A stretch of 61,583 nucleotides of DNA, filler included, from Trichosphaerium sp. ATCC 40318 (lineage: Eukaryota > Protista > Tubulinea): assembly GCA_038496445.1 (NCBI GenBank). It is 3 parts of 3 records of this genome, joined end to end, with 100 filler letters (N's around TTAATTAATTAA, not from the genome) between each part and the next. Parts side by side here need not be neighbours in the genome. Positions count along the whole stretch, not along the records: positions 56,063 to 61,583 come from JALMLS010000109.1; 2 more parts are not named here. One strand, written 5' to 3'. Below are positions 56,063 through 61,583 of the stretch, in pieces (the stretch's first letter is position 1; each line of letters begins with the position of its first letter). The notes beneath the pieces are model-generated. The model had not been told where the DNA came from. It searched no databases and saw nothing but the letters and a program-made list of their open reading frames with translations. A program made the position numbers and the translations under genes.

Positions 56063-57731
56063 TTCCAATGGGATTTTTTTAGCCAAAAAATTGGATACAT
56101 CTTTGCTTGGAGGCCGCATTACATGATCATCTATAGTTGACTTATGCATATACATGTATGCTATTTTGCTCAAGGAATCCAATGCATTCATCTATTTTGT
56201 CATACATGTCCATCATGAATAGTTATTAATTAATTTATATTTTACCTTTTATAGCATATGTTTTCGAAAATGGTCACAGCCAACTACATGATGGATCAAT
56301 GGCGACTGAGGATATATAGTACTTGGCATAGTAATAATAAGAGGTATACAGTTTATTTGGTGGGGTGGCATATATGCGATCCAAAATCAGGAAAATGTAG
56401 AAATTTTCCTCCATTTTTTCATTTTTAGTGGTCGTCCACCATACCCCCTATGAATATTTACTTTAATTGTTATGCCATCTTAATATACTTTATATAAGCC
56501 TATATAAAAACAAAAATGATGGTTGGATTTGAAGGCTTAGAAGCATTTTGAGTTTGTGCCCTTTTTGGCCAAAAATGATGATATTGTTCGTTGATGCACC
56601 AGGCCCCCCATATATTATCTATGGTGTGCGATTCTTCATTTTTCTATTAACAAACATCATGGCATCATCTTATAATTTACTATATATACATAGATGATCT
56701 TGATGAAGCTACCTACAATCATACTTTATGGTAAAAAAACCAAAAAAATGCCATTTTTGCCAAAAACAGCTTTGCCTCCATGGTACCTCTTGATGCCATA
56801 TATCTTTGTTATATGGTTATTTTTTATCCATTTGGAAATGTTATCATGGGTGCAAAATTATATTGGCATAGAGCTTTTTATAGTGCCAATAATATTTTTG
56901 GTGTGTGTTTATGCAATTCATCTATTTTGTTGGACTTATATCATATATTTGCAATCTATTGCACATACATGATCTCAAGCATGGTAGTTGATGACTTGTG
57001 AAACATGAATTCAATAGATGTTTTTAATGCAGCGACACAGATGTTTTATTGAGAATTATAGCTTTTTTTATTTTTTTTTTGTGGTATATATGCCTATCAA
57101 GGCCACTTATGTTAAAATTACATACATAATTGTTTTTATATTTGATTATTAGATATATAACATACTTTTTATAAAAGAATATATCATCTTAGTGCTAAAA
57201 TAAAGGTTTTTTCTCAATGTCAACATGCAAAAATGCTATTTGTACTAAAAAATGATGTAAATAACAGTTTTAATATCATCTATGTTATCATACAATATAT
57301 TTTTATAAAGTATATATTGTAGCTACATAGAAATAACAATGATTTAGTCCTAAATGATCATGGCATTTAGTAGTGATAGCAAATAAATATTTTTGCCATT
57401 TTATAGTTTATCCATTAGGGTTGCCTTGATTACTCACCATGTATATCATCATATACATAGCGCTTGATGTATATTATGTAAATATGCCTTGGTTTATTGT
57501 GTATAAAGTATGTACCATTTATATTGCCTTGGTGTATAGTTATGAGGTGTTTTTTGTAGAAGTACTAAGTTTTTTAATATTTAGTGTATATTTTCGCTTA
57601 ATGAGCAAGACTTGCCTTTTTTGGTAGTTGTTTCACCGAATGAGAATCAGCGAACACTAGGTTTAAACACCTAAGCCCTAGTGTACAAAACCCTAATTCA
57701 CTGATACTAGGATTTTCACTGAACAATAGAG

Positions 57732-57763
57732 TTTAGGGTTAGGGTTTAGGGTTAGGGTTTAGG
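57732..57763 (+). repeat. Interstitial telomere-like repeats
   Basis: TTTAGGG TTAGGG TTTAGGG TTAGGG TTTAGG. Confidence 0.75.
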
Positions 57764-57983
57764 AGTCTGCTACTATTTTTTTTTTCAAACCTTACATTTG
57801 CTTGTTAGTAACATTCCGAGCTAATTTTGCCACATGCTATTGCATGTAGTAATTTTCGTATGTTACAAGGGTCATAAAGATTAGTCCTTGTCATAATTTT
57901 GCATTTTCTCATTATTTTCTTACTATTGTCTACATACACAATTGTCATCAACAATGTCAATTGCATGTTTGAAATTGTGCATG

Positions 57984-58126
57984 AAACTAAAGTGTTTGTT
58001 TGAATTACAAAGACTTTAAGCAGATTCAGTGAAATAGCCTTGATAAAACTAAAGTGTATGTTTGAATTATAAAAACTTTGAAGAGATTCAATGAAATTGA
58101 CATAATAAAACTAAAGTGCATGTTTA
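57984..58126 (+). repeat. ~62-bp tandem repeat, ~2.3 copies
   Basis: aaactaaagtgt(t/a)tgtttgaatta... recurs at ~57984, ~58046 and ~58108. Confidence 0.8.
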
Positions 58127-58402
58127 TTTATTATTTTATAAATAACAATGTATGTACACTTTTTTTTTTTTTTTATAATTATTAATCAATTTCAAAGAAC
58201 GTAGGTGTTCCCTGGTATTGACATACATATGCATGTGTGATTCAATCGCCGTCACGTGATATTGTCTTAGTTTGACTTTATCAAAACACAGGATGAGCAA
58301 CAACAAAGAAGACTCTCCTACATCTAAGGGCTCTGAAAAGCCTATAAATGCTAGGAGAATACCCAAGCAGAAAAAAGGTACCAACTTCCTCCTTTTTTTT
58401 TT

Positions 58403-58453
58403 AACCCCTTCCATTAGGCTTTATTAATTAAATAAAGCCTAATGGAAGGGGTT
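58403..58453. repeat. Perfect inverted repeat (23-bp arms, 5-nt loop)
   Basis: aaccccttccattaggctttatt-aatta-aataaagcctaatggaaggggtt. Confidence 0.95.
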
Positions 58454-58687
58454 TTTTTGATTTTAAAGGGTTTTTTTAAATCCCTAATTTTTCTTTGAAA
58501 GTTTTTCGTTGAACCTCGTCGCACATGTATACGCATGTCACGATAGGCCGCCATAGCAAAGCATTTGAGGACATATTCTATGTGTATCAATGCTAGCTAT
58601 TGCTTTATCGTGTACAGGCATATATGTGTTTTTGATGGGTTTATTTTTTACTTTAATTATACAACAAGTCAATGTATGTACGCATAC

Positions 58688-58870
58688 GTTCCGAGGTCGG
58701 AACTCGTGTTTACATACATTGACTTTTTTGGATTACGTTCCGAGCTCGGAACGTATGTTTACATACGTTGACCTGTTTGGATATGTTCCGAGCTCGGAAC
58801 GTACGTTTACATACGTTGACCTGTTCGAGTACGTTCCGAGCGCGGAACGTATGTTTACATACGTTGTTTT
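58688..58870. repeat. Palindrome array 1 (4 x 48-49 bp, core GTTCCGAGCTCGGAAC)
   Basis: Cores start at 58688, 58737, 58785, 58833. Confidence 0.95.
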
Positions 58871-59327
58871 ATATATTTAGTTGATATTTCTATTTTAACT
58901 TGTTTATTGTTGACTATGACTAACTTTTACACTAGTTCCAGAGCCCAAAGGTATTGGCTGGTTTATATTGGCAAATATAAATTCACGCTTGAATTGGAAG
59001 AAAGCTATTGGCACTCTGTTGGGCGAAGAGGATGGTATTGCCATTGGGTTTTTGTATGTTGCTTTGTTAGATTCTCATATACTTTTGTTCCTTTCAATGT
59101 TTTATTTACATGTATTTAGAGAAGCAATTTTACCAGACAAAGATATTACCCAAGTACATGTCAGAAGTATGCCTTTAGAGCAATTGGAAAATATTTTGAG
59201 CAATAGTTTTTCACTCAGTTTTACAAATACATTGGCTGCAGCATGTGATTTGAATGATCCAGAGCAGCTATCAAATTTGTTCAAGGTATGTATTTTCCCT
59301 TTCATAAACACACACTTGTCACGTAGG

Positions 59328-59540
59328 GTCTCAGTCTCGGAACCTATACCTTACATGCGTTTTTATTGTGTGATAGCGGTCCGAGCTCGGGACCAATGTT
59401 AACATGCATTTTTCTTTTATGATAGCGTTTCGAGCTAGGAACGAAATCCAAACAGGTCTATGTATGTAAACGCACGTCCCGAGCGCGGGACGTATACTTA
59501 CACGCGTTTTCTTGTCCGGTAGCGTTCCGAGCTCGGAAGG
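59328..59540. repeat. Palindrome array 2 (5 x ~49 bp)
   Basis: Cores at ~59328 (degenerate), 59378, 59427, 59476, 59524; within intron 59286-59611. Confidence 0.9.
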
Positions 59541-61004
59541 TTAGCACACATGCCTTTTTAGTCTACTTATTTATCAGAATTGTTGATGTTGACATTGTTT
59601 GTTTTTTTTAGATAAGATTTCCTCACTTTGATACCAAAGACTCTTTGGCAACATTCTTAAACAAAGTGATAAATACTTTTAATGAAGCTCCTTCTGAGTG
59701 GTGGGAGCCTATGGCCTATGATGAGAAATGGACAAACAGACTTGGTATAATACTTGTGTGGAAAGAATATTATATTGGCAGATTGTTATTTGGACAGAGC
59801 AATTGTATGAGGCCACAGCATTAAATCTGACAGATTCTGAATACTATGCTGCACTGTTGATGGTGTATGCCAGAAACTCACTATCCTTTCAGCAAGCTGC
59901 TGATTTTGATGAATTCATGTCGTACGTCCGAACGAACATGCCGACCGCATGTGTATATTTTCGTTTACTCTTTGATATTGTACTTACTTCTATATTAGTT
60001 GCACTAAAGCACATGAGTCAATGAATCTGTGTTTGATTGATAAAAAGGATCTAGAAGCTTTAAATCATACAGCAGCTAAAGATGGCATGAAAGTAGAAGA
60101 CCTACTACTTCCTGGGGATGTTGAACCAAAAGCTGATGAAATGTCTCATATTGTGTGTTTTATGGATGTCAGATCAGTAAACACTAGAAATATCTTGGAC
60201 AAGATGGAACTGAAAGATACTCATCTCAAACCTTTGATATTAACATATAACCCTGTGATCTATAATGGGGTAAAAACACCTGGGTTTGGTGTTGCTGATG
60301 GAGCTCATTGCTTGTTGACAGCTCTCTGGTACGTCACGATCGACCGCCGTCGCACAGACGTTACGCTTGTACGGCGGCGTTCGCGACACATGACCATACA
60401 CAACAGTTGCCTGACATTTTTGTTTTAGCAAACCAAGTCCAACACATGCCAGGACCAACTCTGTCAGCAATTTTAAATTGGGAAAGCAGTTGACATGGTT
60501 TAATCCTTTTAAGGGTTTAAATGCCATATCAACATATTGCTCCAAGCTGAATGAAGACCAAACCAGAGTCACAAAGCATACATTGGTGGATAAGTGCATA
60601 TCTGCCTTGGGGACATTCATGACACTTGCTAACCTGAAATATGACTATCATGCAGATCCCAAGGTTAAGGACAACAGGATAAACAAACGGAAGTGGAGTG
60701 TTGCAAGGTCTATTAAATATAAAACACAATTAATACGTTTGGTATGTCCATTTATTAGCCCCTGAACATTATTTTTTTTACTAATGACATAACTAATTGT
60801 TTTGATTATTAGACACAAGACAGTTTAGTAGGTAAATTTGGTGGCCTGAGTGAAAACAAAACAGCAGAGATCATTAAATCTGGATTGTTTTTCATGCCTG
60901 TGCCTACTATAGTGAGGACACAAATGACTTCTGTGGTGGATAAAAAGGTAAGTGTATTTTATTTATTATGCCCTTTTACACACGCATAATGTATGTACGC
61001 GAAC

Positions 61005-61172
61005 GCTCCGAGCTCGGACCGTCGTTCAACACACATTGCGCATGTTCGCGGACGTTCCGAACTCGGACTGTCGTTCAACACGCATTGCGCATGTTCGCGG
61101 GCGCTCCGAGATCGGAACGTCGTTTCTAAACCACGCATGACGTATGTTCGCGTACGCTCCGAGCTCGGAACG
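61005..61172. repeat. Palindrome array 3 (4 x 49-53 bp)
   Basis: Cores at 61005, 61054, 61103, 61156; within the intron starting gtaagt at ~60948. Confidence 0.9.
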
Positions 61173-61583
61173 CCATTTTACATGCATTACATTTATGAAA
61201 ATCTGTTTTTATAAAATGGGTTTTTTAGTTCCTGTTTTCAAAAAAAGCTGTTGCTCATGGTTTTTGTAGCAAAGTAAGACCATACCAGATATACTATCAG
61301 CATTTTAGTCATGGTGCTTGAATGACCTACCTCTGCTGCAAAAATATCTGTAAGTATCACATGGTAAAGTTACACCAACTCTTATTTTTTTGAATAGTTT
61401 TGCAAAGCAATAAACACATGGTTTATACCCTACAACATCACAAAACTATTTTTTGTCAGGTATAAACTTTGCAAAAAGTTTACAGTACAAGCTTTAAACA
61501 GAGCTGAAAAATCTTGGTGGACCCACATGATAGATGATGAAACACCCTGTTGAAATTGAAGATGAATGTCTTTGTCTGAATAT

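Follow-up and report, generated by a model that had tools for sequence, protein, structure and literature searches.

A candidate ParB-like gene of Trichosphaerium sp. ATCC 40318 with CpG-retaining palindrome arrays in its own introns

Giant EnSpm/Plavaka, MuDR and TLH elements of red algae carry a gene, PAG3, that lies beside tandem inverted-repeat arrays (Petroll et al., bioRxiv 10.1101/2025.02.11.637652). PAG3 is described there as having a very divergent ParB-like domain, with a best HHpred E value of 0.29 and no InterPro domain, and self-binding is proposed for it (bioRxiv 10.1101/2025.02.11.637652). The Ectocarpus element Sola1-1_Ec32 has an accessory gene combining ParB-like and DNA methyltransferase parts, whose proposed role is to bind the element that carries it and to modify that element, and ParB-methylase-type genes may, according to the same source, represent a new class of accessory protein (PMC12477816). 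In Arabidopsis, VANC motifs have increased in number as tandem repeats within introns and other non-coding sequence; they are bound there, and CG methylation is lost locally (PMC5735166). These motifs, YAGTATTAY and AGTTGTMC, are 8–9 bp long and asymmetric (PMC5735166, PMC10398659).

By analogy with these systems, the locus studied here is most like PAG3, the Sola ParB-methylase and VANDAL/VANC. Likened by description, PAG3 and the studied gene are both eukaryotic ParB-like candidates with inverted-repeat arrays, but the arrays adjoin PAG3 in red algae, whereas here they lie inside introns. PAG3 as described combines an N-terminal ParB domain with a 2OG-oxygenase, whereas the studied gene has about 280 residues before its ParB-like part and no enzyme domain up to position 61583; a CpG footprint is seen in the studied arrays, whereas the available part of the PAG3 report describes none. 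Sola1-1_Ec32 resembles the studied locus in that a transposon-borne, ParB-like self-binder is proposed there and a ParB-like candidate is found here. In the studied gene, by contrast, no methyltransferase or transposase was seen, and arrays are undescribed for Sola1-1_Ec32 in the part of that source at hand. Anti-silencing has been demonstrated for VANDAL/VANC, whereas at the studied locus it is suggested by CpG retention. VANC is not known to be ParB-like. The F-plasmid sopC region consists of 10.7 units of 43 bp, compared with 48–49 bp in the studied arrays, and a 16-bp palindrome or inverted repeat is found in each unit of both. The studied locus differs from SopB–sopC in that its gene is spliced, its arrays are intronic and in three parts, no ParA or helix-turn-helix (HTH) was detected, and its core does not match that of F sopC.

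ParB-like genes beside inverted-repeat arrays are already known from algal transposons, where self-binding and self-protection stand as proposals. What is new here is the location of the arrays within the gene's own introns, in what appears to be a CG-methylating host, together with a candidate sequence footprint of protection. The locus offers a single clean 16-bp candidate site and a CpG footprint in the DNA itself, so that one protein, one site and one methylome prediction make the self-protection proposal directly testable. If true, it would represent a second, bacterially derived route to anti-silencing, so far shown for VANDAL, and the gene would be an anti-silencing gene rather than a new partition system.

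Gene model and palindrome arrays

Positions are counted along the window, the whole stretch of 61,583 nucleotides; the studied piece is 56063–61583 (5.5 kb; JALMLS010000109.1), and the gene is cut off at 61583. A GT-AG gene with eight phase-consistent exons on the plus strand, running from 58293 to 60947, was predicted from the sequence alone, splicing included. It comprises 468 codons with 0 in-frame stops in exons 1–8, compared with 40 and 43 in the other two frames. Exon 1 (58293–58377) starts with ATG, encodes a low-complexity N-terminus and ends at a GT donor in phase 1, with 0 stops and 0 CpG. Exon 2 (58936–59053), whose AG is preceded by a CTAAC branch-like site, is followed by exons 3 (59120–59285), 4 (59612–59744) and 5 (59798–59921). 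The gene was compared with short pieces from three low-coverage runs (X1, X2 and X3) of three differently labelled organisms. These pieces showed 86–100% identity overall, and those of the gene, including parts of arrays 2 and 3, showed 97–100%; a 202-nt piece at exon 3 is 100% identical in run X3, as is a piece at exon 5 in run X2.

Probable further exons, in degraded form and with uncertain limits, lie on the plus strand at 61229–61583, where there are 0 CpG as in the exons. In a three-frame reading of this tail, translation probably stops near 61306 and the frame breaks near 61545; indels occur at 61226–61237 in run X1. The studied copy is probably dead. Inactivation by stops, as the original prediction had it, is plausible for the breaks 3′ of exon 8, whereas exons 1–8 are stop-free. 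The Cys codon of the ADGAHC motif in exon 6 (TGC, 60309–60311) stands at the motif Arg position and fits CpG deamination as a candidate change.

The 16-letter palindromic core GTTCCGAGCTCGGAAC occurs in 13 copies in three clusters: at 58688, 58737, 58785 and 58833; at 59328, 59378, 59427, 59476 and 59524; and at 61005, 61054, 61103 and 61156. Core-to-core spacing is 48–50 bp, and once 53. Allowing 3 mismatches, 12 copies were counted, whereas first-order Markov simulations of the piece predict 0.03. Array 1 (58663–58866), in intron 1, has four cores at a period of 48–49 and ends that form an inverted repeat. Array 2 (59320–59556), in intron 3, has five cores at a period of 48–50, and one of its spacers is inverted; array 3 (60987–61189), in intron 8, has four cores at a period of 49–53. 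Array 2 and both ends of array 3 were seen in run X1. The arrays stand at the same positions in the reads of another organism, at about 97% identity. With TRF, arrays 1 and 3 came out at periods of 48 and 49. The original prediction of about 13 copies in three clusters at a period of 48–53 bp was borne out by the counts and TRF, and the phase-consistent model agrees that all clusters are intronic.

The repeated unit exceeds the core. Eighteen adjoining bases are related across all three arrays, spacers of different arrays are alike at 10–14 of 20 bases beside the core, and one array 2 spacer is an array 1 spacer in inverted form. The first core of array 1 sits inside a 66-bp palindrome at the array start, and arrays 1 and 3 terminate in inverted flanks. 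The shared adjoining bases and the inverted spacer indicate that the arrays have a common ancestor and spread by copying from intron to intron. Core and period do persist as had been claimed, whereas the spacers, which had been taken to differ, are homologous and not independent. The claim of compensatory changes in the copy at 59476 did not hold up: symmetric pairs numbered 1, compared with a permutation mean of 0.33 (P = 0.30), and the related copy in run X1, on one low-depth contig, has just one change of the pair. When the 5.5-kb piece was scanned with a profile of the unit, no copy was found beyond the three arrays, the 2.1 kb upstream of the gene included.

Other inverted repeats were observed nearby. 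The array 1 spacers, for example at 58745–58770, contain a second small one (GTATGT-TT-ACATAC). At 58403–58453, intron 1 also holds an inverted repeat with perfect 23-bp arms around a 5-nt loop, which is flanked by T runs and is perhaps a tiny foldback insert.

CpG content of exons, introns and arrays

The exons contain 4 CpG compared with 51 expected (observed/expected ratio, o/e, 0.08), and TpG and CpA are raised. The CpG o/e is 0.30 in the upstream DNA, 1.71 in the introns and 1.91 in the arrays. Among the exon codons for Thr, Ala, Pro and Ser no NCG is used, 13 of 16 Arg codons are AGR, and Cys and Trp occur at ordinary levels. This codon use and the absence of in-frame stops indicate that the exons lost CpG while the gene stayed coding. 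RIP was ruled out as the cause of the loss because CpA is enriched rather than lost.

In the twelve alignable cores, the four CpG positions changed in 1 of 48 cases, by a transversion and not a transition, compared with 17 of 144 (12%) at the other positions. CpG that is methylated is known to decay at a much higher rate than other positions. Given this decay and the divergence of the arrays, unprotected arrays would be expected to have lost their CpG. The simplest reading is that the arrays may have been protected for long from germline CG methylation, that their CG-containing half-sites may have been under selection, or both. The CpG contrast was not part of the original prediction, and it points to methylation shielding rather than to partition.

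CpG is also retained in places that hold no palindrome, namely in introns 5 and 6 and in patches of intron 1, and three short introns contain no CpG. Intron 6 (60329–60428) alone has 13 CpG in 100 nt. To account for introns 5 and 6, either another cause or another motif has to be assumed. The intron 6 words GTCACG and CGTCGCACA are also found in intron 1 (58507–58549), and GTCACG may possibly be a second candidate binding motif. It occurs four times, always on the plus strand (58251, 58537, 59318 and 60333), in non-coding patches rich in CpG that lie ahead of the ATG and in introns 1, 3 and 6, and CGTCGC is found at 58517 and 60348. The o/e of CTG was 0.2–0.3 in upstream (56063–58200) and intronic DNA versus 1.9 in exons; given this abundance, CHG decay is not evident in exons.

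Predicted protein and homologue searches

PLILT, FGVADGAHCLLTAL and LNEDQTRVTKHTLVDK are encoded in frame across intron 6, as had been stated; the candidate ParB domain is split by this intron. Its putative core is the 3′ half (about 60180–60323) of exon 6 (59999–60328), which ends in ADGAHC. All protein searches were performed with single exons as queries, and home-built profiles were made from SopB, P1 ParB, YbdM/IbrB, phage ParB-methylase and plasmid ParB-like proteins. Exon 6 was top of 73 six-frame pieces with both mixed ParB profiles (1.6 bits, 6/1000 shuffles; 4.0 bits over 48 residues, 2/1000 shuffles), ranks that are weak, and partly circular because the motif was first chosen by eye. 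In hhalign, VADGAH fell unprompted on the ADGSRR box of SopB, with a probability of 3% and 0/200 shuffles. HMMs of IbrB only and SopB only scored exon 6 no better than shuffles. When exon 6 and what follows were compared by eye with YbdM and phage ParB-methylase, a helix, a P-hydrophobic strand, the DGxHR/GxxR box, a helix and an Asn helix appeared in order, with the motif Arg replaced by Cys in ADGAHC.

Exon 7 (60429–60741) carries the Asn of KLNEDQ at 60550–60552 and is predicted to be helical (residues 26–42, 49–74 and 91–101 in a low-confidence model); it scored at shuffle level against the ParB profiles. The start of exon 8 (60813–60947) had looked by eye like a Spo0J-like HTH. This candidate was rejected, and the search for a downstream HTH called for by the original prediction was negative: against a ParB HTH profile, which is small and may miss a divergent HTH, exon 8 scored no higher than its shuffles (444/1000). 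Exon-by-exon searches for a ParB/Srx fold gave no match in Pfam, NCBIfam, PHROG, PADLOC, PDB or the Atlas for any exon tested. Single-sequence exon models reached pLDDT 38 and 59, too poor to search, with a best Z of 4.3 and a best Foldseek E value of 1.3. The protein probably has a ParB/Srx fold. The DGxH motif appears closer to the IbrB/YbdM and ParB-methylase type than to the GxxRxxA type of parS-binding SopB.

Searches for homologues were extended to larger collections. With single exons, phmmer against 1.84 billion representatives returned repeat-inflated chance matches only, and the fish NLR LRRs and Ig repeats among them were rejected. Word-index searches were blank among proteins of 0.55–1.75 times the query length, a range in which full-length kin are invisible. 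Scans of IMG/VR and JGI gave no homologue, and tblastn against phage and plasmid collections gave only matches of E ≥ 2. PPR repeats in the PDB were set aside as scores summed over weak pieces, and the only Atlas matches, receiver-like ones, were weak. When viral, metagenome and GTDB collections were scanned for the palindrome, it appeared as single sites or in GC-rich repeats of an unrelated kind, and the tandem pattern was not present in the viral, metagenome and prokaryote collections, apart from such repeats. There was no Rfam match for the arrays, no VANC-family match in Pfam on any exon tested, no sign on the 5.5-kb piece of a transposase, of terminal repeats or of a target duplication, and no 2OG-oxygenase or methyltransferase in exons 1–8 or the tail up to 61583.

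Competing explanations and the upstream DNA

The explanation that we tentatively prefer, with a probability of roughly 0.45, is that a DNA transposon carries this gene as an accessory, and that the gene's product, a dimer, binds the palindromes in the gene's introns and shields the arrays and the element from CG silencing. The host would be a CG-methylating eukaryote, and the gene would ride on a DNA transposon or a similar selfish element. The product, with a divergent ParB/Srx-like domain, would bind the 16-bp palindromes as a symmetric dimer. The palindromes would have been multiplied by tandem duplication and then copied between introns, which would be the sole places in the gene free of coding constraint. 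Binding would keep the arrays free of CG methylation, either by occupancy or through an enzyme domain or partner gene beyond the piece, and the shielded arrays would keep the element active, in the way that VANC acts for VANDAL and that is proposed for Plavaka PAG3. This explanation is favoured by the three arrays in one 3.3-kb gene with none upstream, the CpG contrast under coding constraint, the arrays at matching positions in another organism's reads, the divergent copies of the upstream DNA, the ParB-profile ranks of exon 6 and the precedents from PAG3, Sola and VANC. Against it count the lack of a transposase or element ends on the 5.5-kb piece, ParB scores of at most 4 bits with blank library searches and no HTH, and the CpG kept in introns 5 and 6.

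Inverted flanks bounding each array and homologous spacers, one of them inverted, would also be expected if the arrays were independent foldback or MITE-like insertions or minisatellites in introns, with CpG kept through youth and a protein that has nothing to do with them; palindromes, moreover, perfect themselves by template switching. We consider this unlikely, since the spacers have diverged to 50–70% between arrays and the cores by 12%, yet no core CpG shows a transition, and since three arrays in one gene with none upstream, and with no target duplication by eye, do not suggest independent insertion. Rather more doubtful is a host gene, perhaps domesticated, whose intron arrays are bound by an unrelated host factor and whose CpG contrast results from exon-biased gene-body methylation. 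The clean 8-exon structure under purifying selection, the 97–100% identity of gene pieces in three organisms and the CpG retained in two array-free introns agree with such a gene, but the three short introns and the upstream DNA are CpG-poor, the 3′ end is degraded, repeat DNA lies directly upstream, and no homologue was found in the protein collections searched. The arrays might instead act as RNA, with intronic hairpins that serve as a source of small RNAs or influence how the element transcript is spliced or edited. The folding energy of array 1 is −101 kcal/mol (z −11), and a 90-nt stretch of array 1 is complementary to array 2, but any palindrome array folds, which makes this z value trivial; covariation is at chance, Rfam gave no match, and small RNAs ought to attract methylation and lead to CpG loss, contrary to the observed pattern. 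A role as RNA is thus very unlikely.

The original prediction combined a selfish ParB-like gene and its cis arrays with a ParB–parS/sopC-like partition or centromere-like module, tethering an episome or element for segregation. The first part stands as the best reading, with weak support from the ParB motif, and the second does not. A partition module would account for the geometry shared with F sopC, including the palindromic 16-mer, and for the weak alignment, in register, with the VADG box of SopB. However, the motif is of the DGxH type with Cys at the Arg position, no HTH was detected, the core is unrelated to that of sopC, and the tandem pattern is missing from the viral, metagenome and prokaryote sets save for unrelated GC-rich repeats. 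Linkage to ParA or a transposase, also sought at the suggestion of the original prediction, was not found on the 5.5-kb piece, whose 3′ side is cut off. There is also no sign of an episome, and the eight introns and heavy CpG loss indicate long residence in methylated chromosomal DNA. We regard a partition module as highly improbable. There is likewise little chance that a eukaryotic selfish element has kept a working bacterial ParB clamp, which would load at the intronic parS-like arrays and spread over the element, so as to tether an extrachromosomal form for segregation or to extend a methylation-free state.

The DNA upstream of the gene (56063–58200) is AT-rich and has divergent copies in the other runs; because these copies overlap, the region is a repeat. 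Within the three low-coverage runs, multiple copies were seen of the upstream DNA. It contains no long ORF and gave no family match. A lone half-copy of the core, TTCCGAGCT, is present at 57814–57822 and scores below the unit in the array profile. A short telomere-like run mixing TTAGGG and TTTAGGG was observed at 57727–57763, and just upstream of it lie the word AAACCCTAA and a CACTAGG...CCTAGTG hairpin. A 62-bp tandem repeat of 2.3 copies (57984–58125) is located shortly upstream of the start codon, and one X1 read departs at 58069 into unrelated DNA, which may represent an insertion in the X1 copy.
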